From sequence record ON529851.1: a DNA stretch of 64,000 bases; one strand, written 5' to 3'. Positions 304-24,901 of the stretch are shown here, in pieces. Position 1 is the stretch's first letter. Every line of letters begins with the position of its first letter. A program made the position numbers and the translations under genes. Under the pieces are notes generated by a model. That model worked only from the letters and a program-made list of their open reading frames with translations. It was not told where the DNA came from and searched no databases.

Positions 304-411
304 TGGGGCCTCCCTTGAATGAGCCTCATGCCTAGCACCGATTCGTTAACAAGAGGTTAACGCCGTGCGGCGGTCGGGCGTTAACCTTAACGGGCGTTAG
401 GAAAGCCAGGG

Positions 412-822
412 TCACAGGCCCCGGCACGTTGGGCCGAACCCGGACTCGATCGACGCGGGGTCGGTCAGGGGCAGGGCGCAGCGCCCGCAGCGGCCCTCAT
501 GATAGACCTTGAGCGCGGGCGGGATGCGCCCGGCGGCGAGGTGGGGCCACGCCCACGCGAAGGCGCGCGCGGACGGGGCGTCGGCGCCGATGCTGGCGCG
601 GCGGCCATGCCGGAACGAATCATCGGCGAAGATCGTGCCGAGGAAGGTGTAGTCGGCTTCGTTGTCCGCGCCCGTCAGGACCGACACGAACCAGACGCTG
701 TCCTTGGCGCCCACGCGATAGGTGAAGCGGGCGCCGGTGGTCTCGCTGACCAGCGTGACGCGGGCGCGCCCGGCGAGCATGAAACGGCGGACGGTTTCGG
801 CGGACATTTCAGCGGCGGACAT
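412..822 (-). CDS. DUF6011-like Zn-ribbon protein
   Basis: C-terminal CGRCALPLTDPASIESGFGPTC matches the recalled DUF6011 pattern. Confidence 0.7.
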   Translation of the reverse strand: MSAAEMSAETVRRFMLAGRARVTLVSETTGARFTYRVGAKDSVWFVSVLTGADNEADYTFLGTIFADDSFRHGRRASIGADAPSARAFAWAWPHLAAGRIPPALKVYHEGRCGRCALPLTDPASIESGFGPTCRGL

Positions 823-964
823 GGGGTCGGCTCCGGGCGGGTGATCCTGTCACCCTAGAGCCGATTCGTTAACAAAAGGTTAAGCCCGCGCCGTCGCCGG
901 GACGCGTTAAGGTTAACCGGCGGCAGGCGGGAAAACGCCGCCCGGCGAACCGGGCGGCGCGGGA

Positions 965-1474
965 TCAGGGGGCCAGAGGATCGGGGGCGGGGATGATCTC
1001 GACTTGACGCCGGCCCTGCTTGACGCGCCCGACCTTGATTCGCTTCTCGACGGCGGCGCGCGCCCATTCGTTGCGCGTGGTCTCGGCGGCGTGGCGGCCC
1101 GTCTCATCAACGGCGCTGTAGATGGAATACAGCAGGCCGAACAACGCGACCTCCGGCATGGCCTTGACCGCCTCCAGCATTTCGCCGTTATCGTAGGCGC
1201 CTGACACTTCCACGACGCGCGTCCCCGCGCCGTGCTGCATCAGAATGTAGAAGGTCGATTTGCGGTCGCGGCGGCGCTCGCTTTCGCCGGTGCGGCGGAC
1301 GGCCAGCTTGACGTCATAGGCGCGGTAACAGACGCCCGTGCCGGGCTTGCCGTTGTCGCTTCCCAGGATTCGCATTTCGCGTTCCGGCAGGGGATGGCGC
1401 AGGACCTCGAAGGGCTCGAAAGTCGTGTCGTCGGCGTAGCCCGACCCACGGGCGATGATGGCGCTTTTCAGCAT
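965..1474 (-). CDS. Hypothetical early protein
   Basis: ORF track; GGAGA RBS, CtrA-type promoter, downstream terminator. Confidence 0.8.
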   Translation of the reverse strand: MLKSAIIARGSGYADDTTFEPFEVLRHPLPEREMRILGSDNGKPGTGVCYRAYDVKLAVRRTGESERRRDRKSTFYILMQHGAGTRVVEVSGAYDNGEMLEAVKAMPEVALFGLLYSIYSAVDETGRHAAETTRNEWARAAVEKRIKVGRVKQGRRQVEIIPAPDPLAP

Positions 1475-1528
1475 GAGGGGTCTCCGGTTGCGAGCCTGTA
1501 TCTCTACAGGCCCGGCGTTAACAGGGGC

Positions 1529-1966
1529 TTAATACGTGATGTCGTTCGTGCGGTCCCGCAGGGCCTCGGCGTAGGTGTCGAAGGGCGCCGATTCGGCCTC
1601 TTCTTCGGCGTCATACCAATGGAACTTCTCGACCGGGGCGGCGTCTTCCGTCGCGCCGGGGTAGGTGCGCAGGAAGACTTCCAAGTCTTCCAGATCGGCG
1701 TCGTCCGGGTCCATTTGCAGGGCGAGGGCCTTGGGCTGGGCCGGGACCGCGCCGCCCGAATAGACGTCCACGCACACGCCCATGAAGGTCGCGATTTCGG
1801 TCGCCTGCTTCAGGAACAGCCGCTGATTGTCGCGGGGCAGGGCTTGGGCCACGGCCACCGTATAGGCGTCGCTGGCGAGGCTCCAGACCAGTTCGGTGAA
1901 GGTCTCGACGCCGTCGTCCATATCGGCGTAACCGACGACGGTGTAAAAGGCGGGGGATTCGGCCAT
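1529..1966 (-). CDS. Acidic hypothetical early protein
   Basis: ORF track; RBS and promoter; D/E-rich. Confidence 0.8.
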   Translation of the reverse strand: MAESPAFYTVVGYADMDDGVETFTELVWSLASDAYTVAVAQALPRDNQRLFLKQATEIATFMGVCVDVYSGGAVPAQPKALALQMDPDDADLEDLEVFLRTYPGATEDAAPVEKFHWYDAEEEAESAPFDTYAEALRDRTNDITY

Positions 1967-2156
1967 GGGGCGCTCCTGTTTCGTTGGGGATACCCTAGAC
2001 CGCAGAAGTTAACAATAGGTTAAGACGATGCAGTTTTTCGGGCGGGCGCGCCGGGCGTTAACCTTAACAAGCCGTTAACCTTACCGGCGGGCGGGCAGGG
2101 GCGGCCCCGGCCTAGAGCCGGGGCGCCGGGGCGGCGTCGTTCCGCCCCGTTCCTTG

Positions 2157-2360
2157 TCAGTCTTCGTCCGGGCGGTAATCCGGGTCGGGATCGAAGCGAC
2201 CGCAGAAGGTGCGGCCCTCCGATTCCATGTCAGGCTGAAAATCCCGGATGACGTAGAGCGCCCGGCCCACGGTGTTGAGGTTGAGCACCGCGACCGGGGC
2301 GCCCTTCCGGTCGGCGGTGCGTTGCGCGTCGCGCTTGGCCTGATCGAGGGTCATGCTCAC
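2157..2360 (-). CDS. Hypothetical protein
   Basis: Start overlaps upstream stop; terminator at about 2104-2125. Confidence 0.75.
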   Translation of the reverse strand: MSMTLDQAKRDAQRTADRKGAPVAVLNLNTVGRALYVIRDFQPDMESEGRTFCGRFDPDPDYRPDED

Positions 2361-2725
2361 CCCTCGTAACGGTCGTGAACCGAAACCGGGCCGCCGAAGC
2401 GCGAGCCGCCGAGACGTTCCACGGCTTCGTTAAAGCGGCTGTCCGAGGTTCCGGCGTAGTTGCCGCCGAACATCAGCCAGCGCGTGTCCATCTCGCCGGT
2501 GTCCGTCGCCGGGACGATCTTGACCGCGCCGCGCACGTTGCCCTTGACCAGATAGGCGGCGGGGCGCGACGGGTTGGGGTCGAACGGGCCGTCGACGTTG
2601 ACCAGGGTCAGTTGCGCGACCTTGGACGACACGCCGCCGTTGGTGCAGTCCACCGAGTCCAGCTTCAAAATGTCGCCCGGTTGGTCGGCGGCGCAGCGGC
2701 GGTAGATGGAAACGATCAGGCCCAT
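2357..2725 (-). CDS. Phage hypothetical protein
   Basis: RBS, promoter; TNGGVSS / MFGGNY..TSDSRF motifs recalled from phage proteins. Confidence 0.8.
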   Translation of the reverse strand: MGLIVSIYRRCAADQPGDILKLDSVDCTNGGVSSKVAQLTLVNVDGPFDPNPSRPAAYLVKGNVRGAVKIVPATDTGEMDTRWLMFGGNYAGTSDSRFNEAVERLGGSRFGGPVSVHDRYEG

Positions 2726-2798
2726 GGGGCTCTCCTTTGTTTGACCTTCACACCATAGCGCGAAGGTCTTAACAAGAGGTTAACGCCGGAAAGATTTT

Positions 2799-2963
2799 TC
2801 AGGCGGCGGGAAACAGGGCAGCGGTCGAGACGCCGCCTAGCAGGGCGCGGCGGAACGGGTCGAGCGCGACCACGGCGGCGGCCTTCGTCTTGCGGGCGCG
2901 CGGCTTGGGGGCCTTCGCGGCGGCGGGCTTGCGGGCGCGGGGTGTCTTCGGGGCGTCGGTCAT
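2799..2963 (-). CDS. Small K/A/R-rich basic peptide (54 aa)
   Basis: ATG 2963 below degenerate box at 3020; MTDAPKTPRARKPAAAK... Confidence 0.5.
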   Translation of the reverse strand: MTDAPKTPRARKPAAAKAPKPRARKTKAAAVVALDPFRRALLGGVSTAALFPAA

Positions 2964-3123
2964 GGCAGGGCCTTTCAGCAGGGGTTGAAGTCCAGAGCCC
3001 GCAGCCTCGCATTGATTCCTTACCAAAGGATTAACGGGCCAGGCGCCGCCGCCGGGCGTTAACCTTAACGGATCGGGCGGGACCGTTAACCACGGCGGAG
3101 GGGGGTCCGCCGTGGTCGTGGGG

Positions 3124-3462
3124 TCAGTTCACCCCGGCGATGATCGACAGGTCGCCGTAGAACTTGCCCTTGAACGGGATGCAATCGCCTTGCGGCGAGA
3201 GTTGGTGTTCAATCCAGAACCGGTCGTCGCCCTCGACCTTGGAGCCGTGCACGTTGCTGTAGCCCTTGGCTTCCCACTCGGCCATGACCTCGGGGAAGGC
3301 GGCGCGGAAGGCCTCGCGCTCCATGGCGAACTTGAGTTCGCTCATGTAGGTGATCTGGATATAGCGGAAGGGGCCGATGGTCGGGCCTTCGAATCCCCAG
3401 TCCTCCATGTTCTGATCGGCGTCGTCGCGGCCATGGAACAGGCGCAGATGAACGTCGGACAT
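3124..3462 (-). CDS. Hypothetical early protein
   Basis: Start re-assigned to MSDVHL after GGAGA RBS. Confidence 0.8.
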   Translation of the reverse strand: MSDVHLRLFHGRDDADQNMEDWGFEGPTIGPFRYIQITYMSELKFAMEREAFRAAFPEVMAEWEAKGYSNVHGSKVEGDDRFWIEHQLSPQGDCIPFKGKFYGDLSIIAGVN

Positions 3463-3640
3463 TGGTCGTCTCCTCTTTCGATACAGACCACTATAGAGGC
3501 GATTCGTTAACAAGGAGTTAACGCCGGGACGATTTTTCGGGCGGCGCGGGCGGGCGTTAACCTTAACATCCTGTTAACCTTAACAACCGGTTTACAGGCC
3601 CGTTAACCATGGCGGGGGCGCCGCCATGGTCGGGGTCCGG

Positions 3641-3892
3641 TCAGGCCGCCGGGGGCGGCGGGATCGGGTGGCGCTCGGCGAGGCTCTTGGCGGTCCACGA
3701 GTCGGGGGTCGAGAGGTCATAGGACTCGGCGAACAGGCGGGCGCACTCCTGCACCGTCTCACCCTTCAGGTGGTCTTCATACCAGCTACGCAGTTGGTCT
3801 TCATCGGCGCCCGCGTCGCGGTAGTCGATGCCGTAGCCCGCCAGCAAGGCGGCGTTGGCGGCGGCGAGCCAGAGTTCAAACGTGGGATACAT
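3641..3892 (-). CDS. Hypothetical early protein
   Basis: ORF track; RBS and promoter. Confidence 0.8.
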   Translation of the reverse strand: MYPTFELWLAAANAALLAGYGIDYRDAGADEDQLRSWYEDHLKGETVQECARLFAESYDLSTPDSWTAKSLAERHPIPPPPAA

Positions 3893-4080
3893 CGGGCGTC
3901 TCTCCTTGTTCCGATGCTTAGATCATACCCGGCAGAAGTTAACAAGAGGTTAAGACCAGAAAGATTTTTCAGGGGCCGACCGGGGCGGCGTTAACCTTAA
4001 CAGACCTTAATCTTTTGTTAAGGTTAACGGGCGGGGCCAGGAAATGGTTAACGGCCGTTAACCACTCCCCTTAACCGTCC

Positions 4081-4365
4081 CTAGTTGGGACGGTCGTCGG
4101 TGAACTCGATTTTCTTTTCCGTGGCGGCGATCAGGGTCGTGACGTCGGCGATGGCGTCGTCCAGCTTGGCGGCGCCCTTGTAGGTCTTGCCGGTCCAGCC
4201 GCCGACCATCGCCAGCAGGTTCTTGGCGGTGTAGGCCCGGTTGACCTTCATGCCGATCTTGAGGGCGTGCAGGCCCCGCCGGACGGCGATCATCTGGTAG
4301 CGGGCGATGGCCTCGCCGGTGTGGGTGACGGCGCCGTGTTCGGAGATGTGGACTTGATCGGTCAT
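4081..4365 (-). CDS. Hypothetical early protein
   Basis: ORF track; RBS and promoter. Confidence 0.8.
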   Translation of the reverse strand: MTDQVHISEHGAVTHTGEAIARYQMIAVRRGLHALKIGMKVNRAYTAKNLLAMVGGWTGKTYKGAAKLDDAIADVTTLIAATEKKIEFTDDRPN

Positions 4366-4562
4366 GTCTGTGTTCCCTTGTTGGTGAGATCACTATAGCG
4401 GCCTAGTTCTTAACAACAAGTTAAAATCGAAATAAATCGTGCCTAACGGAAAGGGTTAATTTTTCGGGGCCGGGCGTTAACCTTAACAAGAGGTTAACGG
4501 CTGTTAAGGTTAACGCCAGCGGGTCAGGCGAGACCGCCCCGGCGAACCGGGGCGGCGGGGGG

Positions 4563-4808
4563 TCAGCCGATCTGAAACAGGATGCGCGACAGCTTCTCGC
4601 GCTGCCGGCGCCCGCCGACCGGGGCGAGCACTTTACGCACCCGCAGGGTCCAGCCGCGATCCGGCATGACCACGGCGGGGTGATCGTTCCACATCGCCCC
4701 GGCGCGGCGCTCGACGGCGGCCAGCGTCCCGGTCAGGGTTTCGGTGCGTTCGCCGGGCTCGCCGTGGCGGTTGGCGATGGTCAGGCGGTAGGTGGCGAGA
4801 TCGGTCAT
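4563..4808 (-). CDS. Hypothetical early protein
   Basis: ORF track; promoter 4853, terminator about 4535-4560. Confidence 0.8.
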   Translation of the reverse strand: MTDLATYRLTIANRHGEPGERTETLTGTLAAVERRAGAMWNDHPAVVMPDRGWTLRVRKVLAPVGGRRQREKLSRILFQIG

Positions 4809-4903
4809 GGGCGGCTCCCGGTGGTTGATCCCGCCACACTACAGGCGAGGTCTTAACAAGGGGTTAACAGCAGGGGCGCCCCGGCGAACCGGGGCGGCGG
4901 GGG

Positions 4904-5527
4904 TCAGCCCAGATGAATGGCGCCGTCGTCGCCGGTGTAGAGATAGACCTCTTCGGGGTATTTTTGCGCGGCTTCCGTCAGGGCCTCGCCCTCCGCTTCG
5001 GGCCAGTCGCCGTCTTCCCAATACCCGACGCCGCTGCGGGTCCGGGTCATGTAGAAGTCATAACCGGCTTGCTCCTGCACCGAACAATTGACCGCGCGGA
5101 CCTCGCCCGACGCATAGGCCGCTTCCAAGGTGGCGGCGTTCTCGCGTTGGAAGCGTTCGCAATCCGCGACCATTTCGCGCAAGCCGTCCGGGTGAATCTC
5201 TTCCGGGCAAATCGTGTTGTCGCGGTCGTGGTCCGCGTTGGGGTGTCCGGTCGGATACTCGGCGCCGTTGGAGGCGGCGGCGGCGATGTAGCCGCGCGTG
5301 AACGAATCGCACGGCGTCAGGATCGACCAGGACTCGGCCTCATAGGCGGCGCGCGCCTCGGCGTTGGCCTCTTCGAGGGCGTCCACAACGGCGCGGGCTT
5401 CCGCGACCAGAGCGGCGGGTTCCGTGTGTGGGTATTGCATCACCGTCAGGGCGGCGATCTGCTTCGCCGTCAGGGGGCTATATTCGGGGACCGTGGTTTC
5501 GGCGGTCAGCTTGGCGAGGGTCGTCAT
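4904..5527 (-). CDS. Phage hypothetical protein (AGxDF.MTR..xGxG.W type)
   Basis: Start MTTLAKL after RBS; QAGYDFYMTRTRSGVGYW motif. Confidence 0.8.
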   Translation of the reverse strand: MTTLAKLTAETTVPEYSPLTAKQIAALTVMQYPHTEPAALVAEARAVVDALEEANAEARAAYEAESWSILTPCDSFTRGYIAAAASNGAEYPTGHPNADHDRDNTICPEEIHPDGLREMVADCERFQRENAATLEAAYASGEVRAVNCSVQEQAGYDFYMTRTRSGVGYWEDGDWPEAEGEALTEAAQKYPEEVYLYTGDDGAIHLG

Positions 5528-5896
5528 GGGGTTGCTCCCGTTGATGTGTGAGCATATTGCACGGCAAGGTCTTAACAACAAGTTAACGCCACGCAGATTT
5601 TTCAGCGGGCGGGCGGGCGTTAAGGTTAATGCGAAAGGCTCGCAAGGGGCGGCGTTAACCTTAACAGAATCGCCCGAAAAATTAACCACGCCCGTTGACG
5701 CTTTCTTAACGACTCGGCGCTAGGCTCAAGGGTTCCATAGCCACGCCTCGCGCCGGGTCCGACCCCCCGCGCGCGGTGGTCCGCGCTCGCCTCATCCGGG
5801 GCGGGGCGCCCGGCCACGCGCCCCGACATCAGGAGGCGCGAGCCCGCCCGGCTGGGCGGTCGATCGGTCATGCCGGCGGCCGCCAGGGCGGGGGTG

Positions 5897-6056
5897 CGTC
5901 GAATCGAAACGGCGTCAGGTCAAGTCGGCCGGCGTCAAATCGAAATGGCGTCAAGTCAAGTTTGATCGTGTCAAATCGAAATGGCGTCAAGTCAAGTTCG
6001 CCCGCGTCAAATCGAAACGGCGTCAGGTCAAGTTCGCCCGCGTCAAGTTTGATCCG
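5897..6056. repeat. 4 x 36-bp tandem repeat, two CGTCAA-type motifs per unit
   Basis: Units at 5897, 5933, 5969, 6005 (cgtcaaatcgaaayggcgtcargtcaagt...) plus partial at 6041. Confidence 0.95.
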
Positions 6057-6080
6057 CCAGGACCTGAGCGAAAACGAAGA

Positions 6081-6109
6081 CGCCCGGCGCGCATGAAAGC
6101 GGCCGGGCG
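6081..6109 (-). terminator. Intrinsic terminator
   Basis: CGCCCGGC...GCCGGGCG stem below the 22-aa peptide ORF. Confidence 0.6.
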
Positions 6110-6124
6110 TCAGGGGTCATCCGT

Positions 6125-6193
6125 TCAGAAACAGAGACCCACAATCATGAGGGCGAAAACGATCTTGGACGCGGAACAGAGTTTATCGAGCAT
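6125..6193 (-). CDS. 22-aa hydrophobic peptide MLDKLCSASKIVFALMIVGLCF
   Basis: AGAAGGAAG upstream, terminator downstream, paralog at 23546-23614. Confidence 0.65.
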   Translation of the reverse strand: MLDKLCSASKIVFALMIVGLCF

Positions 6194-6217
6194 ATTCAGG
6201 GGCTTCCTTCTACTAAG

Positions 6218-6361
6218 GAGTCACGCCCGGTAGTAAACGTGACAGGTCGTGGGAACGCTACAGGGAGAAAACTCGCGAGTCATCGTTCGGGGCTAACGTG
6301 ACTGAACTATTTGTTAATCCGGGGCCGGGTCTGGAGTCACGCTGGGTGGGAAACGTGACTC
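6218..6361. repeat. Three 28-bp dyads AGTCACG-N12-CGTGAC
   Basis: Dyads start at 6218, 6277, 6334. Confidence 0.9.
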
Positions 6362-6374
6362 CGGGGTTTCGGTT

Positions 6375-7358
6375 TCAGGCCTCGGCTTGGCGGACGACCG
6401 TGGCGGCGGTCGTGCGGCTGGCGAACTGCTCGCTCGCGATGTCCCCCTTCAGCCCCTCAAAGGCCATGATGCTCGCCCTCAGGTCCGGGGTGATGTAGTC
6501 GGTCCCCTCAGCGGTCGCGTCCGCCTGAAACAGGTCCAGCAGGCGCGCCCGCACCCCGGCGGCGTCGTCCGCATAGAGGATCGGCGCGCCCTCCTGCTCG
6601 GGCTCGATCCGATACGGGCGCCGCTCGCACTCGATCTCGAACGGCCCTTGCCAGTTGCGGACCTCGACCGGCGCCAGGGCGGCGTCGGACAGTTCGTCAA
6701 AGACGCCGTTCTCACGGTCGCCGCATTCCTCGACCTCGGCCTGAGACACGAAGAACTCATGGCGGGCGTCGTCCGCCGCGATAGCGTGGTCCATGATCCA
6801 CGCCTGACCTTGGAAGGTCGCGCGATAGGGCAGGGTTTCGGGCGCCGGCAGGGCGGACGCCGGGGGGTCGCGGTCCATCCAGAAGCGGTAGAGGGCCGCC
6901 CAGGCGCGCGCCCGCTGGCGGTCGCCGGTCGCGGGCAGATAGGCGTCGTGCAGGGCCTCGGCGGCGGCGGCCCGGTCCGGGCCGTCCGGATCGGCCTGAT
7001 CCGCCTCATGGGCGTCGAAGGTCAGCAGGACGGCTTGCGTATGGCGGGCGGTCCATTCACCGGCCGGACCCGCCGCCAGAACCTCGCGCACCTCGGGGAG
7101 GGTCAGGTGGGAAAACTGGGCAGGGTCCCCGGCGATCAATTCCGCAGGGTCCCCGGCCTTGGATTCGGCAGGGTCCCCGGTGATGAATTGGGCAGGGTCC
7201 CCGGCGATGGATTCGGCAGGGTCCCCCCGCTCGATTCCGTCCGCGATGACATAGAGCCGACCGATGAGGCCTTGGGCGGCTTCCGGCGTGGGGTTGTGGC
7301 GCAGCGCCAGCACTTGGGCGGCGGCGGCGCGGATCAGGGCGGGATAGGTGGTGCTCAT
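6375..7358 (-). CDS. Hypothetical protein with 5 x GDPA 8-aa repeat
   Basis: ORF track; GGAG RBS; repeat encoded by a 24-bp GGGTCCC array. Confidence 0.8.
   Translation of the reverse strand: MSTTYPALIRAAAAQVLALRHNPTPEAAQGLIGRLYVIADGIERGDPAESIAGDPAQFITGDPAESKAGDPAELIAGDPAQFSHLTLPEVREVLAAGPAGEWTARHTQAVLLTFDAHEADQADPDGPDRAAAAEALHDAYLPATGDRQRARAWAALYRFWMDRDPPASALPAPETLPYRATFQGQAWIMDHAIAADDARHEFFVSQAEVEECGDRENGVFDELSDAALAPVEVRNWQGPFEIECERRPYRIEPEQEGAPILYADDAAGVRARLLDLFQADATAEGTDYITPDLRASIMAFEGLKGDIASEQFASRTTAATVVRQAEA
7123..7225. repeat. 5 x GGGTCCC at 24-bp period inside a CDS
   Basis: 7123, 7147, 7171, 7195, 7219. Confidence 0.95.
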
Positions 7359-7496
7359 AAAGGGCTCCTCTTGGAGGGAGATGATCAGAGGTCCTGTCTA
7401 CCGGGAAGAAGTTAACATCCGGTTAACGGGGCGCATTCAGCGGCGGCGGCGCGTTTACCCGGCGTTAAGGTTAACGGCGGACGGGCGACCCGAAAG

Positions 7497-7530
7497 CGCC
7501 CGCCGGGGGAGACAACCCGGCGGGCGCGGT
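7497..7530 (-). terminator. Terminator hairpin with GTTGTCTCCC loop (also 15116-15145, 18645-18678)
   Basis: GCCGGG/CCCGGC stem, same loop in three places. Confidence 0.7.
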
Positions 7531-7550
7531 CCTGACGGGGAGACAGTCCG

Positions 7551-8033
7551 TCAGGAGATCGGGGTCAGTTCGTCCTCGAAGGCGTCGTATTCGGCGCCGT
7601 CGTCGGTGCGGACCCGATACATCGGGCCGACCTCCGCGTCGGCTTCGTCCTCAGCCAGCACGCGCAGAACCTCAGCCGGTGTGTCCGGGGCGGTGATGGC
7701 GTCCGAGCAGGTCGAGGTGAACAGGACTTGGGCGCCGGGCTCGAACGCAGGGGCCTGGGGCTCGGCGCCGTCTTCGTCGTCGTTAGACGCCTGGAACTCC
7801 GCCGACGACCCGTCGATCTGGGTGCCGGGCCAGGACACGCCAGGATCGGCCAGCATCCGCAGACAGCCGCTGATGTCGGGCTGGGCGCGGGTGCCGATAT
7901 AGTCGCTGTAGGCATCGGGGACGCCGACCGGGGTTCCGGGGTTCTCGGCGTGGTAGCGTTGCAGGGCCGCGTCGAACAGTTGGCGGGGGTCGGTCACGTC
8001 GAGGGTGATGGTGATCTGATAGGCGTCGCGCAT
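7551..8033 (-). CDS. Acidic hypothetical early protein
   Basis: ORF track; RBS, promoter, terminator. Confidence 0.8.
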   Translation of the reverse strand: MRDAYQITITLDVTDPRQLFDAALQRYHAENPGTPVGVPDAYSDYIGTRAQPDISGCLRMLADPGVSWPGTQIDGSSAEFQASNDDEDGAEPQAPAFEPGAQVLFTSTCSDAITAPDTPAEVLRVLAEDEADAEVGPMYRVRTDDGAEYDAFEDELTPIS

Positions 8034-16143: not shown

Positions 16144-16767
16144 TTAACGCGCGATGTCTCTTTCGCCCGCCTGCCATGCGTCGGCGAGGTCGTGGATTTG
16201 CTCGGCGGACAGGCCGGGGTGCTCCATGCCGTTGGTCAGGATTTGACCGATGTCGTTGTCGTCGGGGGCGACCCGACCGGCGGCGAGTTCACGCGCCAGC
16301 AGGCGCAGGCCCGCCATGGCGGCGTCGTATTCACGCGGGCTGAGGCCCAGGACCGACGCGTCGCGGGGGTCGTTCAGACCCTGGGCGATGACGGTCGCCT
16401 CGGCGCGGGACAGGACGCCCTGCCCCTCGACCAGGGCCAGGATGAAGTCCGAGCGCGAGGTCTGCGTGGCCTTCAACCCGTCGCGGTGCTCCTCCCACAG
16501 GGCGGCGGCGTCGGACAGGCTGAGGCCGCCGCTTTCCAGCCGGTCAATGTCGAACGACAGGGCCAGATGCTCGGCGCGGCGCAGGGCGGCCGACAGGTGG
16601 TCGAAGTTGTCGTCGGCCTCGCCCTGATCCACCACCTGATAGGGCGAGCGATCCGGGTCCACCACGCCCGTCCAGTCGATGACCGAAAACGCGCCGGTCG
16701 GCCCGGTGCGCTCGGCGGCGGTGCGCAGGTTGGCGCTGATCTCGTTGAGATGGATGGGCGCAGGCAT
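16144..16767 (-). CDS. Hypothetical early protein
   Basis: RBS and promoter. Confidence 0.8.
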   Translation of the reverse strand: MPAPIHLNEISANLRTAAERTGPTGAFSVIDWTGVVDPDRSPYQVVDQGEADDNFDHLSAALRRAEHLALSFDIDRLESGGLSLSDAAALWEEHRDGLKATQTSRSDFILALVEGQGVLSRAEATVIAQGLNDPRDASVLGLSPREYDAAMAGLRLLARELAAGRVAPDDNDIGQILTNGMEHPGLSAEQIHDLADAWQAGERDIAR

Positions 16768-16823
16768 GGGGCGTCTCCCGTGTTTCGATGATCTGACCCT
16801 ACAGGACAGATGTTAACAAGAGG

Positions 16824-17366
16824 TTAATGGTAGGCGTCGATTTCCGACAGCGGCGGCAGGATGCGGAAGGGGATCGCCTCGCCGCCGTTCGCCTTGGCGA
16901 AGGCGTTCTCATAGGTCTTGTAGAGGCGGTCGCGGCGCCCGTCCGTGCGCAGGGTCCACTTGGTCGGGTGGCCGGGTTCCCAATTCTGATTGTGAGCGGC
17001 CTCGACGGCGGCGATGAAGTTCGCGACGGTCATTCCGTCATGGTCCTGCCGGGTCGGGGAGATGCTGTTCAGTTCGTGCCAGGGGTGGTCGTCGGCGTAG
17101 TGGGCGCCGCCGCCGTCGCTGGACCACGAAGCCGATTCCATCCCCAGCATGACGGGCAGGAAGTCGTCGCCGTCGCCGGTCAGCAGGGAACAGACCTTGA
17201 CCGCCTGCTCCATCGTCATCAGGCCGTCCAGAATGAATTCCAGATGCTCCTTATAGTTGGAAGCGTCGCGATACATATAGGACAGGCGCGTGTTCTGTCC
17301 CGGATGGCCCGCCCAGACGGACGGGTTGATCTGGTGCGGCAGGGCGGCGGGGGTCTGGTCGGTCAT
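16824..17366 (-). CDS. Hypothetical early protein
   Basis: RBS and promoter; YMYRDASNYK motif. Confidence 0.8.
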   Translation of the reverse strand: MTDQTPAALPHQINPSVWAGHPGQNTRLSYMYRDASNYKEHLEFILDGLMTMEQAVKVCSLLTGDGDDFLPVMLGMESASWSSDGGGAHYADDHPWHELNSISPTRQDHDGMTVANFIAAVEAAHNQNWEPGHPTKWTLRTDGRRDRLYKTYENAFAKANGGEAIPFRILPPLSEIDAYH

Positions 17367-17429
17367 GGCGTCTCCTCCATGGGGTGATCTCGATTGAGAC
17401 CACCCTACAGGACAGAAGTTAACAAGAGG

Positions 17430-17912
17430 TTAATCGGCGGCGGGAATTCTGAGGTCCACGCCGAAGACGTGAACCAGTTCGCCGGTCGGCTTGCGCACGA
17501 TCACGCCCAGCCACTGCTCCTCGACAAAATAGCCCGTCACCTCGGCGTCGCCGATGCGATTGACGGCGACGCGCACGGTCGCGCCGACCGGGGGCGGGGA
17601 GTCCTCGCCGGACCACAGGACGGAACCGGCGAGGCCCGGCGGCAGCAGTCGGCCGTCCTTCCAGCGCGCCAGTTCATAGGCGGGGACGTGGGGGCGCCAC
17701 AGGGGGGCGTAGACCTCCATCAGCCACGTCGGGCCGTAGGTGTTGCGGATCGCGCGCAGCAGTCCGCCGTCCGCTTCCTGGGTGTCGCCGCCGGTCGCCC
17801 ACAGGAGGGTCAGATGCTCTTTCCAACCGCCTTCGACCTTGGCGTATTTGTCGGCGAAGTTCAGCAGGGCGGCGGACGCCTCGGGCGTCAGGGCGGGGTA
17901 GGTGTCAGGCAT
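17430..17912 (-). CDS. Hypothetical early protein
   Basis: RBS and promoter. Confidence 0.8.
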   Translation of the reverse strand: MPDTYPALTPEASAALLNFADKYAKVEGGWKEHLTLLWATGGDTQEADGGLLRAIRNTYGPTWLMEVYAPLWRPHVPAYELARWKDGRLLPPGLAGSVLWSGEDSPPPVGATVRVAVNRIGDAEVTGYFVEEQWLGVIVRKPTGELVHVFGVDLRIPAAD

Positions 17913-18068
17913 GGGGCGTCTCCCTTGTTCGATGATCCCTTATAGCCACAATGTCTTAACAAAAGGTTAATTCCATGACAAGGGCGTGCGGGCGTTAACC
18001 TTAATGTGGCGTTAAGGTTAACGCGACCGGGTCGCAAGAAAGGTCCCCGGCCGAAGCCGGGGACGGGG

Positions 18069-18533
18069 TCAGGCGGCGTCCTTGTATTCGGGGAATTTGG
18101 CGATCAGGGCGGCGACCGTCTCCTCGACCGACTTCATGTTGGGGAAGTAGTGGTCGGCCGGATCGGCGAAGTCCAAGGCGAAGTCGCAGATGAAGGGGAT
18201 CGCGTCCCACTGCCAGCAGCGGCAGCATTCGAACCAGTCGCGCCCGTCCTGATTGAAGGCGATCCACACCGCCTCGAAATAGGGGCCAAGGCGCATCATC
18301 ACGTCGCGCATCTCGGCGGAGCCGTAGCCGTCCAAGGCGTCGTCCCAGCGCGCGTAGGCGGCCCGCCGCTCCTTGTCCTTGGCGCGCTGGTTGCGCGAAT
18401 CGACGGACAGGGCGACATACTCCCACGCCGCCATGGACGCGTGGATCGCGGCAGACGGATAGCTGGCGCGCATCTTGCGATACTTCTTGGCCGTGGGCGT
18501 GGGCTTGAACGTGGTGCGGTGCTTGTAGGGCAT
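18069..18533 (-). CDS. Hypothetical early protein
   Basis: Start MPYKHR after GGAGGAGA RBS. Confidence 0.8.
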   Translation of the reverse strand: MPYKHRTTFKPTPTAKKYRKMRASYPSAAIHASMAAWEYVALSVDSRNQRAKDKERRAAYARWDDALDGYGSAEMRDVMMRLGPYFEAVWIAFNQDGRDWFECCRCWQWDAIPFICDFALDFADPADHYFPNMKSVEETVAALIAKFPEYKDAA

Positions 18534-18688
18534 GGGCGTCTCCTCCCGGTTGATCCTGAGACCATAGACCCTAGAAGTTAACAAGAGGTTAACGCCGTGA
18601 ACGTCATGCGCCGTTAAGGTTAACGCCCGCGTGCGGGGAAAGCCGCGCCGCCGGGGGAGACAACCCGGCGGCGCGGCAGGCGGCGACC

Positions 18689-19246
18689 TCAGACGTTGTA
18701 GTCGCCGTATTCCGTCCCGCACTGGACGATTTCGCCGGTGGCGTCGTCCCAGTGGATGCGGTTCAGGCGCAGGATGCCGCCCCTGACGTGGGTCCATTCC
18801 ACCTGACAGGTGATCATGTCGTCGAAGATCGCCTTGGGCTCGCCGTATTGCGACCAGTCGATGCCGCCGCGCTGATCGACCTCGCCCTTGGCGTCGGACA
18901 GGATGCGGGCCAGCACGTCGGGCATGAGGCGACCCGGCGCCCTCTTGGTCCCATAGGAGCCGCGCCCGCCGTTCGTCATGTTGCTGAACTTCGTGAGGTC
19001 CTGCACATAGTTCTCGACCTCGACCGTCCCCGGCTGGGGCAGGTCATACATCAGGTCCGACAGAATGTCGCCGACCGGATAGGACTCCGTGGCGGCGTCC
19101 AGCCTGTCGGCCAGTTCGGCCCCCTCGTCGCCCGGCTGGACGTAGAGTTCGGCGCCGTCGGCGCGGCGCGCCAGGACGCCGCCCATCGAATCACGCCAGG
19201 CCTTGAACCCGCCGTCGTCGCTCTCCCAGGTCGGCGCCTTGCTCAT
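18689..19246 (-). CDS. Hypothetical protein
   Basis: Coupled to upstream gene; terminator follows. Confidence 0.8.
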   Translation of the reverse strand: MSKAPTWESDDGGFKAWRDSMGGVLARRADGAELYVQPGDEGAELADRLDAATESYPVGDILSDLMYDLPQPGTVEVENYVQDLTKFSNMTNGGRGSYGTKRAPGRLMPDVLARILSDAKGEVDQRGGIDWSQYGEPKAIFDDMITCQVEWTHVRGGILRLNRIHWDDATGEIVQCGTEYGDYNV

Positions 19247-19659
19247 GCCTCGACCTCCTCTTCGACTTCGGCATAGGCGCTGGGGATGCGCTTGTTCGTG
19301 TGATCGCAGAACAGATCGGGGTCCTCATAGTTGATCTGGACGCTGTCGAGGCGCCAGCCGGTCGAGGCGTCGTGCAGGTGGTCGTCACAGACCAGCGTGA
19401 AGTTCGCCTGCACCGCGTCGAACGACAGGGCGACGCCGTCGCGGGTGGCGAAATAGAGCGGATAGCCGCCGAGGTCCGTGTAAGGCCCGGCGCGCAGCGC
19501 GGCCTTGACCTGCTGAAGCGCCTTGACCGGATCGGCGTCGAAGCGGGCGGCCGATCCCTTATAGGCGGCGCGCAGCGGCTTGGCGGTTCCCCAGCCGGGC
19601 TGGCGGGTGTCGTAGAGGGCGCCATCGGACGAGGCGAAAAGGTGGGCGGGCAATGTCAT
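19243..19659 (-). CDS. Phage hypothetical protein (GGYPLYF...INYED..L.CDH)
   Basis: RBS, promoter, recalled phage motif. Confidence 0.8.
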   Translation of the reverse strand: MTLPAHLFASSDGALYDTRQPGWGTAKPLRAAYKGSAARFDADPVKALQQVKAALRAGPYTDLGGYPLYFATRDGVALSFDAVQANFTLVCDDHLHDASTGWRLDSVQINYEDPDLFCDHTNKRIPSAYAEVEEEVEA

Positions 19660-19828
19660 GGGGTCTCCTCCCGTTGCTGACCCTCCCTGTATCGCATGAA
19701 GTTCTTAACAACAAGTTAACGCCGCGTTTTATTTCCGGCGGCGGACGGCGGGCGTTAACCTTAACGCGCTGTTAAGGTTAATGCGAGCGGGTCGCGGAAG
19801 GGGCGCCCGGCCGAAGCCGGGCGCCGGT

Positions 19829-19969
19829 TCAGGCGGCGGTGCGGTAGCGGGTGTGGCCCCGGTCCCAGGTGTAGGCCTCGACCGATCCGCTCGGGTGGGG
19901 GTTGTTCCACCACTTGACGCCCCGGCGCGCGGCGGCGTAGCCCGCGCCTTCGATCTGGGCGGCGTCCAT
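19829..19969 (-). CDS. Rmf-like 46-aa protein
   Basis: MDAAQIEGAGYAAARRGVKWWNNPHPSGSVEAYTWDRGHTRYRTAA resembles the Rmf G.Y.A...G...(N/C)PY......W..G pattern. Confidence 0.5.
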   Translation of the reverse strand: MDAAQIEGAGYAAARRGVKWWNNPHPSGSVEAYTWDRGHTRYRTAA

Positions 19970-20214
19970 CAGGCGCCGATCCGGTGGGCCGGGCAGAAGC
20001 CCGACACGACCTTGACGCGACCACGCTTGAAACCGGGGCGCAGGGCGCGCGCCGAGCGTTCGGCGTCGGCGGTCTTCATGTGACCGCAGGCGCAGGACGC
20101 GCCGGGGTCGCGGGTCTGGGCCTCGCGCACCTTGTCGGCGCCGGCCTGTGTGCCGAGCCAGCCGCAGAAGGGCTCGCCGCCGACCGTGATGTGAGCGGGT
20201 TGGGTGTTAATCAT
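19969..20214 (-). CDS. Hypothetical protein
   Basis: Coupled ORF. Confidence 0.7.
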   Translation of the reverse strand: MINTQPAHITVGGEPFCGWLGTQAGADKVREAQTRDPGASCACGHMKTADAERSARALRPGFKRGRVKVVSGFCPAHRIGA

Positions 20215-20743
20215 CGTCGCCGTCCTCCTCGTCCTGGGGCATATCCTCGGCGTCGGTCAGGCCGGTGACGGTCCACCAGCCGAGGCCTTGAGCGTCACCC
20301 GACGTGTAGCCTTCGCGGACCATCGTCGCCATCGCTTCCAGCGCGTCGGCCACGTCCTCGTCGGTCATGGCGTCGTGACCGTTGAAGGTGAAGGTCGGCT
20401 TGACCGTCACCGGGGCGGGGGTCGATTCGCTGTTGATCTCTTCATGATGCGTCACGCTCTCGGCGACGATCTCAGCGAGGTCGTCGCCGACCAGCATCCA
20501 GTCTTCGGCGTCGCCGTCCGGGTCATAGACGACGAAGGCGCCGGGGTATTGCGCGACGCGGGCGCGCCAGCCGTTGCGCACCTCGGCGTGTTTCTCGCCG
20601 ATCCAGTCGGCGCCCATATGGGTTGCGCCCTCGTAGGCTCTGACCGGGAAATTGGTCGTCATCAGTTCGCTGCGGGTGGCGACGCGCAGGCCCCACACGT
20701 CGAGGGCGGTCTGGGCTTGCGTCAGGGTCATGGCGTCGGGCAT
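20207..20743 (-). CDS. Hypothetical protein
   Basis: Start MPDAMTL after AAGGAGG. Confidence 0.8.
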   Translation of the reverse strand: MPDAMTLTQAQTALDVWGLRVATRSELMTTNFPVRAYEGATHMGADWIGEKHAEVRNGWRARVAQYPGAFVVYDPDGDAEDWMLVGDDLAEIVAESVTHHEEINSESTPAPVTVKPTFTFNGHDAMTDEDVADALEAMATMVREGYTSGDAQGLGWWTVTGLTDAEDMPQDEEDGDDD

Positions 20744-20753
20744 CGGGGCCTCC

Positions 20754-20951
20754 TTAGAGATGGATCGCGGCGTCGAACGCCTGGGATTGCAGTTTCTTGG
20801 CGGCTTCGGCCTCGGCGGGGTAGAGCCGGGCCAGGCCGTCAAAGCGTTCTTTCTGATGCGAGCGCTCGCCCTCGGCGGCGGTCATGTGCATGACCTCGCC
20901 CCACAGGTGGGCCATTTCGAGGATCAGGACAGAGCGGCGGGAAGCGTTCAT
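20754..20951 (-). CDS. Hypothetical protein
   Basis: RBS and promoter. Confidence 0.75.
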   Translation of the reverse strand: MNASRRSVLILEMAHLWGEVMHMTAAEGERSHQKERFDGLARLYPAEAEAAKKLQSQAFDAAIHL

Positions 20952-21003
20952 GGCGGTCTCCTTGTTGACCTCGCCACCCTAGCAGCGAGGTCTTAACAAG
21001 AGG

Positions 21004-21249
21004 TTAACAGCGGCGGAGCATTTCACGCATCAGGGCTTCCTCGTTGCGGGCGATGTCCAGCGCGGCGCGGTCGTGGCCTTGCTCATGCGCCTGCTTGGCC
21101 TGCTGTCGGCAGATGTCCTGGCGCTTGCGGATGTCAGCCTCCGACAGGGTGCGGAACAGGGCGTCGGCCTCCTGATCGACCTTGACGGTCCAGTGCTGCT
21201 GCGATTCGTCGTCGGCGCGGAGATGGGCGGGGAAGTAGGCGTCGGCCAT
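21004..21249 (-). CDS. Hypothetical coiled-coil protein
   Basis: AGGAGG RBS. Confidence 0.75.
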   Translation of the reverse strand: MADAYFPAHLRADDESQQHWTVKVDQEADALFRTLSEADIRKRQDICRQQAKQAHEQGHDRAALDIARNEEALMREMLRRC

Positions 21250-21257
21250 GGGTCCTC

Positions 21258-21569
21258 CTAAAGGTTCTGGTCGCGGACGCGGGCGAGCGCGGTGTGGACG
21301 GCGGGGAGCAGGGTCGGCGTCTGGCCGCTCATCCAGAACTCGGTCGCGTCGCCCTCGCCCATCTGATGCGAGACGCCGTAGAAGCAGGCGCCGCGCGGGG
21401 TGTCGTCATTGGGGCATTGGACCCAGACCGGCAGGTCTTGGCCGTCGCGGGTGAGGACCAGCGCGTCATCCGTGCTGCCGTCGTCGGCGACCTCATAGCG
21501 GGCCGACAGGCCGGCAGCGGTCAGCAGGGTCATGGCGGCGGTCCAGGGGGCGCCTTGGGGAAGGGGCAT
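21258..21569 (-). CDS. Hypothetical protein
   Basis: RBS and promoter. Confidence 0.75.
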   Translation of the reverse strand: MPLPQGAPWTAAMTLLTAAGLSARYEVADDGSTDDALVLTRDGQDLPVWVQCPNDDTPRGACFYGVSHQMGEGDATEFWMSGQTPTLLPAVHTALARVRDQNL

Positions 21570-21704
21570 TGCGATCTCCTTTGTGCTGACCCTGTTCTAG
21601 CAATGATTCGTTAACAAGAGGTTAACGTCCTGCGCGGTGGTCCGGGGCGTTAACCTTAACAGGGTCAGGCCGGAAAACGCCCCGGCCGAAGCCGGGGCGC
21701 AGGG

Positions 21705-22595
21705 TCAGCCGACCCGCTCCTTCTTGAGGTGGTAGGACCGACCGTGGGTCATCAGGGAGCGGAACCCGCCCAACCGGGTCTCGCCCGGCGCCGGGGTCAC
21801 GACATAGACCGGATCGAGGAAGTCGTCGTTCCAGCGGATCACGTCGTCGAACGCCTGCGGCGTGTGCAGCACGACCTTATAGGGTTCGCCTTCGGGCGCG
21901 ACCAGATCGGTGGTGTGGTCCTCGTCGCCCTTGTAGCCGAACACCGACAGGACCGCGACCGGCAAGCCGTCGTCGAGCGTCGAGAGGTCTTGCAGGGCGC
22001 GGGCCTCGGCCAGCCGCTTGTGCGGCTCATAGAGGGCGCAGTCGCGCTTGAGCAGGTCAGCGCGCAAGGCGACGACACGCTGGGGCGTCAGGTCCAGAGA
22101 CGCGCAGGCCCCGATGACGACGCCGTAGATGAAGCCGAGTTCGTGCTGCGTGAGCGACACCATGCCGTCCATTCCCGCCGTCGCGACCTCCTGATTTTTC
22201 AGGCCGAACGCCGCCAGGGCGCCGGCGACGTCGCGGCACTCCTGCCGGGTCGGGGCGGTCTTGGCCTCGATGTGGAGGCGCAGGGTGTCGCGGGCCTTCA
22301 TCAGGTCCACAATCGCCAGCGACAGGCCGGTGTAGCGTCCATCTTCGACCGGGGCGGGCTTGGGCTTCGGGGCCGGGTAGGTCTCGACGCACAGCAGGCG
22401 GGCGCGGGTCTCCTCGACCGTATAGACCTCGACCTGATAGGCCATGCCGAGCGCCACGCGCAGTTCGTTGCGGATCGCCAGACCGGCCTCGGGGTCGGTG
22501 GTGGTCAGGCGCAGTTCGCCGATCCGGCGGTCCTCGCCCTGGGCGGGATGGCGGCGCGACAGTTCGAGGCGCAGGTCGTAGGGGGCGTCGGTCAT
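21705..22595 (-). CDS. Hypothetical early protein
   Basis: RBS, promoter, terminator. Confidence 0.8.
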   Translation of the reverse strand: MTDAPYDLRLELSRRHPAQGEDRRIGELRLTTTDPEAGLAIRNELRVALGMAYQVEVYTVEETRARLLCVETYPAPKPKPAPVEDGRYTGLSLAIVDLMKARDTLRLHIEAKTAPTRQECRDVAGALAAFGLKNQEVATAGMDGMVSLTQHELGFIYGVVIGACASLDLTPQRVVALRADLLKRDCALYEPHKRLAEARALQDLSTLDDGLPVAVLSVFGYKGDEDHTTDLVAPEGEPYKVVLHTPQAFDDVIRWNDDFLDPVYVVTPAPGETRLGGFRSLMTHGRSYHLKKERVG

Positions 22596-22648
22596 CAGGG
22601 TCTCCCGTGGTTGAGCGTCCGGTATAGCCGGAAGGTCTTAACAAACCG

Positions 22649-23020
22649 TTAACGGCGGTCTTCGCTGAGGCGGGCGAGTATTTCGTCGTTCGTCATCGTG
22701 TCCAGCAGGTCTTGCACCTGACGGGCCTTTTCGTCCTCGACCGCCTGAGCCGCCGCCTTGGCGCGGCGATGCTCGGCCAGCGCCGCCTTGCCCGCTTCGG
22801 TCGTCTCCGGGTCGATGGTCATGTAAAGGCTGACCTCGCGGCCCTGCCGATCCACGAAGGTCAGGCTTCCAGACGGACGCACCTTGACGGTGAACATCGC
22901 CTTGACCAGCCGCTCGGCGGTCTCTTGACCGAAGTCGCCGCCGAAGCTGCCGCCCGCCGCCTTGAGGGTGTTGTCGCTCTTGAGGCGGGTGTGATAGCCG
23001 ATGTTCTTGTAGGTGTGCAT
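22649..23020 (-). CDS. Hypothetical protein
   Basis: Start MHTYKNIG after AAGGAG. Confidence 0.8.
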   Translation of the reverse strand: MHTYKNIGYHTRLKSDNTLKAAGGSFGGDFGQETAERLVKAMFTVKVRPSGSLTFVDRQGREVSLYMTIDPETTEAGKAALAEHRRAKAAAQAVEDEKARQVQDLLDTMTNDEILARLSEDRR

Positions 23021-23030
23021 GGGGCGCTCC

Positions 23031-23369
23031 TTAGAAGGGAATGTCGTCGTCGAACGCGGGCGTCGTGACATAGGTCTGGGCGGGGCGGGCGCGGCGGGCG
23101 GCGTCCATCTCGGCGCGCTCCTCGTCCGTCGCGCTCCAATACTCGTCGTCTTCCGGGTGCGCGCCGGGCTCGCCGCGATAGTGCGGGTTCTTCACCCAAG
23201 CGTCGAACGGGTGCAGCAGCCACTCCACGTCAGGCGCCTCGAAGCCTTCCGACTGAGCGAACCCCGACAGGGCCAGGCTCATGTATTCGCCCTGGCTCAG
23301 CGACTCCATCGCCAGAGCGTCTTCCTTTTCGCGGCGGGCCTCTTCGGCCATTTCGATCACATCGCGCAT
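23031..23369 (-). CDS. Small acidic protein ending in SSB-like tail DDDIPF
   Basis: C-terminus PAFDDDIPF; W..NPHY.G.PG.HPE motif; no OB fold evident. Confidence 0.8.
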   Translation of the reverse strand: MRDVIEMAEEARREKEDALAMESLSQGEYMSLALSGFAQSEGFEAPDVEWLLHPFDAWVKNPHYRGEPGAHPEDDEYWSATDEERAEMDAARRARPAQTYVTTPAFDDDIPF

Positions 23370-23545
23370 CGGCGTCTCTCCTTGTGAGCCCCCTTTATGC
23401 CAGACAGAAGTTAACAACAAGTTAACGCCGACGCTTTTCTGCATTTTTCTTCAGGCGGCGGCTGCGGGCGTTAACCTTAACAGCCTGTTAAGGTTAACGG
23501 GCGGGCGGGGCCTGGGAAACGGCGTCCCGTAACGGGACGCCTCTC

Positions 23546-23614
23546 CTAGAAGGTGAGCATGATGACCAGCAGGGCCAGAAAGAGGCGGGAGGCGCCGGCC
23601 AGCTTGTCGATCAA
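23546..23614 (-). CDS. 22-aa hydrophobic peptide MIDKLAGASRLFLALLVIMLTF
   Basis: TTG overlaps upstream TGA; paralog of 6125-6193; hairpin follows. Confidence 0.6.
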   Translation of the reverse strand: MIDKLAGASRLFLALLVIMLTF

Positions 23615-24081
23615 GACTCGCTGTCCGCTTTCATCGCCGCGCACAGGGTTTCGACCAGCCGCTTGTGACGCGCCAGAGCGGCGGGGTCGGCGCGCTCGCC
23701 TTGGAAGGGGACCAGCACCAGAGGTGTGGCCGAGGGGTCCAGCGCCCAGAAGATTTCCGTCTCGCCGTCCGTCATCTGGTAGGTATAGACGTTCAGGTCG
23801 GCGGGGGCGTGGTCGAGGAAATAGACGCGCCCGTTGAACTTGACGTCGAAGGGCTGATCCGGCGTCGCCAAGTCGATCTCGGCCAGCACGGCGTCGCGCA
23901 CGGCGTCAATCGGGTGAACGCCGTCTTCGCCGATTTCATCAGGACGGGATTCGGCCTCGGCCTCCGCGTCGCGCTTGATGTCCTCGACCACGGCGGCGCG
24001 CGCCTCCTCCCAAGTCGCACAGGCGCTGGGCTCCTCGTCGGGCATGAAGCCCGAGACATTCGATCCGGTCACATAAGGCAT
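23611..24081 (-). CDS. Acidic hypothetical protein
   Basis: Start MPYVTGS after AAGGAGA. Confidence 0.8.
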   Translation of the reverse strand: MPYVTGSNVSGFMPDEEPSACATWEEARAAVVEDIKRDAEAEAESRPDEIGEDGVHPIDAVRDAVLAEIDLATPDQPFDVKFNGRVYFLDHAPADLNVYTYQMTDGETEIFWALDPSATPLVLVPFQGERADPAALARHKRLVETLCAAMKADSES

Positions 24082-24233
24082 CGGGGTCTCCTTGTTGGTT
24101 CCGATGGTGCAGACTACCCGACAAGGTCTTAACAAAAAGTTAACAGCGGCGCAATCGCTTTTCTTCGCGACGTTAACCTCTTGTTAACTTCCGTGTGGGA
24201 TAAGGGACAGGTCAACAACACAGGAGATCGCCG

Positions 24234-24893: not shown

Positions 24894-24901
24894 CCGGGGC
24901 G

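Follow-up and report, generated by a model that had tools for sequence, protein, structure and literature searches.

A 38-kb block of Brevundimonas phage Marchewka carries about 50 promoters of one design whose CtrA-type boxes are probably read by host CtrA

In the genome of Brevundimonas phage vB_BpoS-Marchewka (348 kb; isolation host B. pondensis LVF1), a member of the Dolichocephalovirinae (phiCbK-like phages), about 50 promoters of one design are gathered in a single block that resembles a terminal repeat. Each of them contains a TTAA-N7-TTAA box of the kind recognized by the host regulator CtrA, and they are probably activated by the phosphorylated host protein (CtrA~P). The stretch under study, hereafter the window, comprises 64,000 nucleotides and corresponds to bases 62001-126000 of record ON529851.1, so that window position 1 is record position 62001; over its first 24 kb, the match to this record was 99.9%. 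Coordinates are those of the window unless the record is named, and negative values lie to its left. For the census of boxes in the whole genome, the record was fetched in pieces, each of which was scanned separately, and the pieces were never concatenated.

The window contained 47 perfect boxes, compared with 0.06 expected from shuffled sequences (the largest number in a shuffle was 1). All of them were located between 346 and 26356, and none was detected in the rest of the 64 kb. The total for the genome was 71, and 70 of these fell within record 50058-88356, that is, in 38 kb or 11% of the genome. Leftward, the block extends 12 kb beyond the window, to record 50058, and it is limited by peptidase and portal genes and by terL, the gene for the large terminase subunit (26651-29374, minus strand). 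Its part inside the window (1-26650, minus strand) continues leftward and stops at terL. All annotated genes in 1-24100 are on the minus strand, and the sole plus-strand gene is 24234-24479. The location of the genes and of the directional box on the minus strand, like the 12 kb further left, was absent from the original prediction, which had been made from the window alone. TTAA tetramers were similarly distributed: 251 of the 349 in the whole record lie in the 40-kb block, and the remaining 308 kb contain 98 compared with approximately 257 expected from base composition. Outside the block, there is a single CtrA-type cluster (record 239306-239345), in which a TTAACCAT half site, a full box at 239319, and a palindrome half motif lie 48 nt ahead of a flotillin-like gene.

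Boxes of the promoter type numbered 51 in the block and 33 in the window. In the span 346-24187, there were 42 boxes, namely 33 of the promoter type (32 on the minus strand and one on the plus strand) and nine belonging to the upstream palindromes described below. From the promoter type, a weight matrix of 32 nt was derived, which found 56 sites genome-wide, all inside the block, and added degenerate boxes at −3333, 3020-3034 (minus strand), and 5695-5709 (plus strand). The prediction of 34 perfect boxes and one degenerate box serving about 45 genes in this span was essentially right: 33 perfect and two degenerate boxes were counted, and 34 units serve 45 annotated coding sequences (CDS). It had also been proposed that full boxes cease after 26.4 kb, where TTGAC promoters take over. 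The last box indeed ends at 26356, and promoters of the latter type were found beyond it. This other conserved class, TTGAC(A/G/T) followed after about 10 nt by ATTCCTTTACA, was observed at approximately 44875-44930, 45915-45975, 50640-50700, 54350-54400, and 56550-56610, and may represent a middle or late class. The strongly skewed position of the CtrA-type sites (70 of 71 in 38 of 348 kb) and their mainly intergenic or promoter location, with some short junctions overlapping the end of the preceding gene, agree with the signature of phages with a low positional entropy genome (LPEG) as defined in Mascolo 2022.

On the gene strand, the promoter box is directional and reads TTAAC-YTNTTG-TTAA. 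Its modal form, TTAACCTCTTGTTAA, occurs 16 times, and its orientation follows the strand of the gene, including the lone plus-strand gene. An A-rich tract lies immediately upstream. The box is followed by C or G and then by a near-invariant T five bases downstream (position +19). This T was present in 48 of the 50 Marchewka promoters (e.g., at 341 for the box 346-360) and also in the promoters of the phages CcrPW and Bajun and in two of three phiCbK promoters; we know of no CtrA or sigma contact that would explain it. The −10 element begins with TA 11 nt, or sometimes 12 nt, after the box; T occupies position +26 in 39 of the 50 promoters, and A occupies position +27 in 44. Common forms of the element are GCTAGAAC, CTAGGGT, and CTATGGT. 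A spacing of 11 nt to a TAnnnT element had been predicted. The spacing was confirmed apart from the 12-nt cases, whereas the complete TAnnnT was present in only about half of the promoters; among the four examples named, it was found at 3507 and 16813 but not at 346 (TAGGCA) or 10712 (TAGAAC). A conserved ATCAAC lies approximately at the expected transcription start and is followed by a GGAGA ribosome site, and the distance from the box to the start codon is 41-55 nt. The predicted lack of a TTGAC −35 sequence was borne out by a generic sigma-70 scan of 1-20000, which gave one site compared with 2.6 expected. The TTG-like triplets within the box are 12 or 20 nt from the −10 element, outside the range of 16-18 nt. 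As expected of class II activation, 51 perfect boxes occupy the promoter position in promoters having no functional −35 of their own. The 5' end of the box would be at about −38/−39 relative to a deduced transcription start.

The junctions between genes are of two types. Long ones (approximately 135-240 nt) contain a hairpin, a palindrome, the A tract, and the box in this order, and short ones (52-73 nt) contain the box only. Owing to the short T tails, a generic terminator scan gave no more than the chance level, and a custom hairpin search detected GC-rich hairpins after 34 of the 53 genes having a gap of at least 50 nt. Nine minus-strand promoter boxes are located in 329-4867 (at 346, 869, 1518, 2009, 2769, 3507, 3939, 4410, and 4853), each promoter running from the box through 11 nt to the −10 element in the direction of lower coordinates, and the corresponding start codons, 42-46 nt after the box, are at 303, 822, 1474, 1966, 2725, 3462, 3892, 4365, and 4808. 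Eight in 5555-11934 on the same strand (5572, 7412, 8083, 8900, 9804, 10712, 11167, and 11920) serve CDS that end at 5527, 7358, 8033, 8855, 9758, 10666, 11122, and 11878, respectively. They are followed by nine minus-strand boxes in 12754-18592 (12771, 13654, 14284, 15049, 16133, 16813, 17419, 17956, and 18578), with start codons 43-55 nt on, and by six in 19688-24143 (19705, 20993, 21611, 22638, 23411, and 24129; minus strand), several of which head operons of two to four genes. The only perfect promoter box on the plus strand (promoter 24173-24204) is the modal 15-mer, diverges from the 24129 promoter, and serves the CDS 24234-24479. Of the degenerate boxes, the minus-strand one at 3003-3034 has two half-site mismatches, scores 19.8 bits with the weight matrix, and serves the CDS 2799-2963. 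The plus-strand one at 5695-5726 (22.2 bits) has a −10 element and points into the unannotated region 5528-6374.

The identification of the boxes with CtrA sites is based on phiCbK, a member of the same subfamily. Within the 10.3-kb direct terminal repeat (DTR) of this phage, three perfect boxes precede gp005, gp018, and gp020, with the same spacing to the −10 element. Two of them (gp005 and gp018) are TTAACGGTTTGTTAA, and the third (gp020) is identical to the modal 15-mer of Marchewka. The gp005/gp018 15-mer in turn recurs in Marchewka at 22638 and −828. It has been reported that the gp005 and gp018 promoters are shifted by CtrA~P in gel assays, that mutation of the box abolishes the shift, and that both promoters lose activity in ctrA-ts Caulobacter in the absence of the phage (Mascolo et al. 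2022, PMC9437464). This is the paper to which the original prediction had referred for CtrA sites in such phages, and its content agrees with that statement. The likeness to phiCbK extends to the distance of 11-12 nt to TAGGGT/TATGGT-like −10 elements, to the small genes of unassigned function, and to a block placed directly after terL; phiCbK differs in having three perfect boxes compared with the 51 promoter boxes (71 in total) of Marchewka and in infecting another host genus (Mascolo et al. 2022, PMC9437464; Gill et al. 2012, PMC3556154). Activated host promoters likewise have a full CtrA motif in the −35 region, and that of ctrA P2 has its 5' end at −39 (Zhou 2015, PMC4287350); ctrA P2, fliQ, and pilA site 1 all have the full box over −35 with the 5' end near −39 (Zhou 2015, PMC4287350; PMC11264516). 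The recurrence of exact phiCbK 15-mers with the same geometry upholds the claim that the boxes are placed as in host CtrA-activated promoters. By analogy with these sites, activation of the block promoters by host CtrA appears well supported.

Selection on the box was examined in 31 orthologous promoter regions of phage Papperlapapp, which are 91% identical overall. The whole box was identical at 449 of 465 positions (96.6%; p = 1.6e-12 vs the flanks), compared with an identity of 85.6% in the flanks. The TTAA half sites were identical at 247 of 248 positions (p = 1.8e-14), and the seven inner positions at 202 of 217 (93%; p = 0.002). As judged from this comparison, the box in the block promoters is under selection.

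Several points weigh against activation by host CtrA in a terminal-repeat-like block. The seven inner positions and the downstream T are conserved far beyond the known need of CtrA, and this in phages of two host genera; there may be an additional reader of the site, e.g., a polymerase contact or a second protein. Furthermore, the transcription start is a deduced one, and CtrA binding and activation in Brevundimonas are inferred by analogy. As the assembly in the record is circularised, the status of the block as a terminal repeat comes from synteny only. The first of these points would also suit an explanation in which a phage protein, carried in the virion or made first, reads the box, and the promoters form a phage-controlled middle class merely resembling CtrA sites. 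Candidate readers exist, since the phage has a GcrA homologue, three XRE-type helix-turn-helix proteins, and one protein annotated as MotA-like. However, the same phiCbK 15-mers are active, and dependent on CtrA, in uninfected Caulobacter, and no response regulator is annotated in the whole record. We regard a phage-encoded reader of this kind as improbable. The gene annotated as middle transcription regulatory protein MotA (record 252421-253029, L005:26421-27029) matched no Pfam family at E ≤ 0.01, which leaves a mode of the T4 middle-promoter type (MotA/AsiA sigma appropriation) without a recognized activator. No sigma factor or RNA polymerase was present among the annotations of the whole record either.

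The comparison with phage Gurke showed that the CtrA box and a conventional −35 sequence occupy the same place. Gurke was isolated on the same host strain as Marchewka, its terL is 72% identical, and the layout of the block is the same. About 48 Gurke promoters have the form CTGAAAAAGAGG-TTGACAC, 14 nt, CCTAGAAGG, with the same leader. When homologues were aligned at their start codons, the Marchewka box fell exactly over the Gurke TTGACA, and the −10 element, A tract, and leader coincided. Among 38 homologous pairs of block genes, 25 have a CtrA box in Marchewka and TTGAC in Gurke, and the reverse was not found (0 pairs). Gurke has a single degenerate box of the promoter type, and its other CtrA-type sites are palindromes and half sites. 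Phage CcrSC has no promoter-type box and carries 12 palindromes ahead of TTGACA promoters. Both phages share with Marchewka the portal-block-gap-terL layout, the junctions of hairpin, palindrome, and A tract, and the leader, but have a consensus TTGACA 17 nt from the −10 element and CtrA-type sites only as palindromes or half sites.

Such an exchange of promoter class in 25 homologous genes, together with the stereotyped junctions and the turnover of the block among close relatives (42-55% of the region covered at 87-97% identity), could also be expected if the intergenic cassettes were mainly recombination substrates that shuffle small genes, as in T4-type phages, and if their uniformity were due to gene conversion. 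The promoter-stem-loop cassettes in hyperplastic regions of T4-type phages and the pre-early genes of T5, which sit in a long terminal repeat, are comparable sets of many small orphan genes with their own early promoter and hairpin; these T4-type and T5 promoters are plain sigma-70 promoters without a host activator box and are unrelated in sequence to those of Marchewka. Recombination would, however, account for the spread of the cassettes and not for their function, and the cassette would remain a promoter. It is the half sites that are best conserved (247/248), and shuffling is compatible with activation by CtrA rather than an alternative to it. As the principal explanation, recombination therefore seems highly improbable. 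Gene duplication was ruled out as the source of box uniformity: the 72 block proteins have no paralogues among them, and the boxes were therefore not copied along with duplicated genes.

Promoter-type boxes were found in other relatives in different numbers: 3 in phiCbK, at least 3 in Bajun, 13 in CcrPW, about 40 in Papperlapapp, and 51 in Marchewka, which in addition has the palindromes and a 32-bp array. CcrPW, an LPEG phage with an 18.4-kb terminal repeat, agrees with Marchewka in the core, the spacing, and the T at +19, but has only about one-fourth of the number of boxes at half the density, and few upstream palindromes among the listed sites. Predicted CtrA sites numbered 17 in phiCbK, 38 in CcrSC, and 62 in CcrPW (Mascolo supplementary table, PMC9437464). 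The density and the activator geometry had both been put forward as unusual. Only the number proved unusual, and CcrPW with 13 such promoters and 62 predicted sites limits its rarity; the geometry is the standard one of CtrA and had already been shown for phiCbK. A search of IMG/VR with the modal 15-mer gave single, chance-like matches except for a CcrPW contig, and no uncultivated relatives were obtained in this way. The published description of the isolates makes no mention of CtrA, and a literature search found no paper linking CtrA with the name Dolichocephalovirinae.

A second type of TTAA site lies farther upstream. It is a palindrome made of two inverted GTTAACCTTAAC copies, giving four TTAA sequences (TTAA-2-TTAA-7-TTAA-2-TTAA), and it is usually located 30-62 nt upstream of the promoter box, after the GC-rich hairpin. 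Of 54 copies of the half motif TTAA(GG/CC)TTAA counted genome-wide, 52 lie in the block, and 31 of the 50 promoters have one 30-62 nt upstream of the box. An example is found at 2052-2090, and further palindromes are centred on the boxes at 3563, 4007, 4483, 12825, 14319, 18001, 19761, 23477, 24541, and 26342. Additional upstream CtrA sites are also known at host pilA, where they modulate timing (PMC11264516).

Between the block and terL is a gene-poor gap (24480-26650) containing four repeat families. The first is a minus-strand array of about four 32-bp copies (24746-24892; score 198, 87% matches; boxes at 24746, 24778, and 24810), the unit of which is GTTAAGGTTAAC plus GTTAACCAT and has one full CtrA-type box and additional half sites. 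It is followed by a minus-strand array of about 13 copies of the 16-bp GATTTGACGCG (24891-25140; phiCbK counterpart 1764-1897) and by a 25/50-bp array of GGGACCC palindromes (26082-26290; counterparts 876-988 in phiCbK and L010 42825-42914 in Gurke), and dispersed CGTGACTC repeats make up the fourth family. The order of the GGGACCC, TTTGACGCG, and GTTAAGGTTAAC arrays is kept in phiCbK 876-2078, just inside the left end of the terminal repeat, and the Gurke region corresponding to the gap is L010 41589-42914. The gap probably serves packaging or replication as a conserved cis module. In an unrelated phage, divergent genes are separated by a CtrA-bound, non-coding stretch with many TTAA repeats, which resembles the Marchewka gap at 24.5-26.6 kb, but there CtrA acts as a repressor. 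A second non-coding repeat cluster is located within the block at 5528-6374, with a GCGTCAAATCG array at approximately 5890-6060 and GAGTCACG/CGTGACT repeats at approximately 6215-6365. This unannotated region of 847 nt shares two repeat families with the gap; it is retained in Papperlapapp (80% identity over 847 nt) and, in part, in Gurke. Possible interpretations are a second cis element, the boundary of a repeat, and an RNA or gene lacking an annotation.

The palindromes and the 32-bp array, being outside the promoter position, raise the question of whether the boxes chiefly form a CtrA sink, or act close to the genome end as cis sites in replication or packaging, with a secondary role as promoters. 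Points in favor are the conservation of the gap arrays with phiCbK at the genome end and the 71 full boxes per phage genome, compared with the 52 full-motif start sites reported for the Caulobacter chromosome (Zhou 2015, PMC4287350); on numbers alone, titration of CtrA is plausible, more so if the block is duplicated at the ends. A pure sink, however, would not need 51 boxes at a fixed distance to a −10 element, leader, and start codon, with an orientation that flips with the gene. Gurke retains the palindromes without the promoter boxes, and the two types of box are therefore separable. We consider it unlikely that the boxes as a whole are a sink or cis sites in the first place; the sink idea suits only the palindromes and the 32-bp array, which, by analogy with pilA, would be more plausible in the role of a sink or of a timing device.

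The genes served by the promoters gave few clues to function. Pfam matches were obtained for only five block proteins and comprised six families. The five are ArfA, RMF, DUF7447, DUF6011, and an ArdC-like anti-restriction protein, which also has a zincin peptidase domain. The DUF6011 gene (412-822, minus strand) is the only one of these in the window; of the 54 block genes within or overlapping the window that were screened against Pfam, 53 had no family. The RMF and DUF7447 genes lie to the left. The block protein with the ArdC N-terminal and zincin peptidase domains also matched a PHROG anti-restriction family (E = 9.9e-86), and the gene annotated as 'DNA primase' (L001:4204-5115, record 51772-52683) probably encodes this ArdC-like protein. 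The predicted anti-restriction and ribosome-modulator genes would fit a role in host take-over. They are the one support for calling the block early, a term that otherwise reflects its position.

The phiCbK terminal repeat starts inside terL and that of Colossus just after it, and the terminal repeats of CcrSC and CcrPW likewise hold dozens of small genes. The Marchewka block follows terL in the same manner, and from this synteny and the gap arrays shared with phiCbK it may be a collapsed terminal repeat or a region containing the DTR. The terL product (907 aa) aligned end to end with phiCbK-group terminases annotated as intein-containing precursors, and an intein may also be present in Marchewka.

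In the mechanism that we favor, activation by host CtrA~P, the block would consist of about 50 independent transcription units of small, mutually unrelated genes. Each unit would have a promoter for host RNA polymerase, with a −10 element and an A-rich upstream tract, in which the full CtrA box replaces the −35 hexamer. Phosphorylated host CtrA bound at the box would be a class II activator that recruits polymerase, on the model of ctrA P2 or phiCbK gp005, and transcription of the whole block would track host CtrA activity. CtrA~P is present in swarmer cells, and the block might be expressed at once in the infected swarmer cell or only later, at the predivisional stage. Delayed rather than immediate expression has been proposed under the term 'lytic deferment' (Mascolo et al. 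2022, PMC9437464), and host promoters with a full box are reported to be active only in predivisional cells and not in swarmers, which was attributed to SciP (Zhou 2015, PMC4287350). By analogy, these data suggest that expression in swarmer cells, as had been assumed originally, conflicts with the published behavior of host full-box promoters. SciP motifs are common at −60 to −90 of host CtrA promoters but were not enriched in the phage: GCGAC/GTCGC was found within 140 nt in 25 of 50 promoters, which is about chance at 66% GC, without a positional peak, and a small palindrome was seen in only 4. The phage promoters might therefore escape the silencing attributed to SciP in swarmers. By a plain count, GANTC, the site of CcrM methylation, lies between the box and the −10 element in 10 of the 50 block promoters, usually in CGAATCG; those in the window are the promoters at 346, 869, 3507, 9804, 10712, 11920, 15049, and 21611. 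The GcrA homologue of the phage (Pfam PF07750, E = 2.7e-9; L004:19497-20045) makes a dual CtrA/GcrA input at these promoters a possibility.

Phage promoters with a CtrA box had already been published, and Marchewka has the largest set among the phages compared. Beside the size of the set, the second type of TTAA palindrome and the repeat-filled gap, both common to phiCbK, are new, and the promoter swap between Marchewka and Gurke is a useful new point. As a tentative scenario, which we hold to be possible rather than probable, the Marchewka lineage may have converted nearly the whole terminal block to CtrA promoters, including at least 25 genes that have sigma-70 promoters in Gurke; in that case, the host cell cycle would gate the onset of infection, the boxes would draw CtrA off host sites, and the two sister phages would follow gated and ungated strategies. 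The idea that CtrA controls phage genes is recent and rests on few tested promoters, and Marchewka offers about 50 of one design. The conserved inner positions of the box and the downstream T may mark activating CtrA sites. The Marchewka/Gurke pair on one host strain could reveal whether CtrA boxes delay, permit, or time infection, and whether such a number of boxes disturbs the CtrA regulon of the host.

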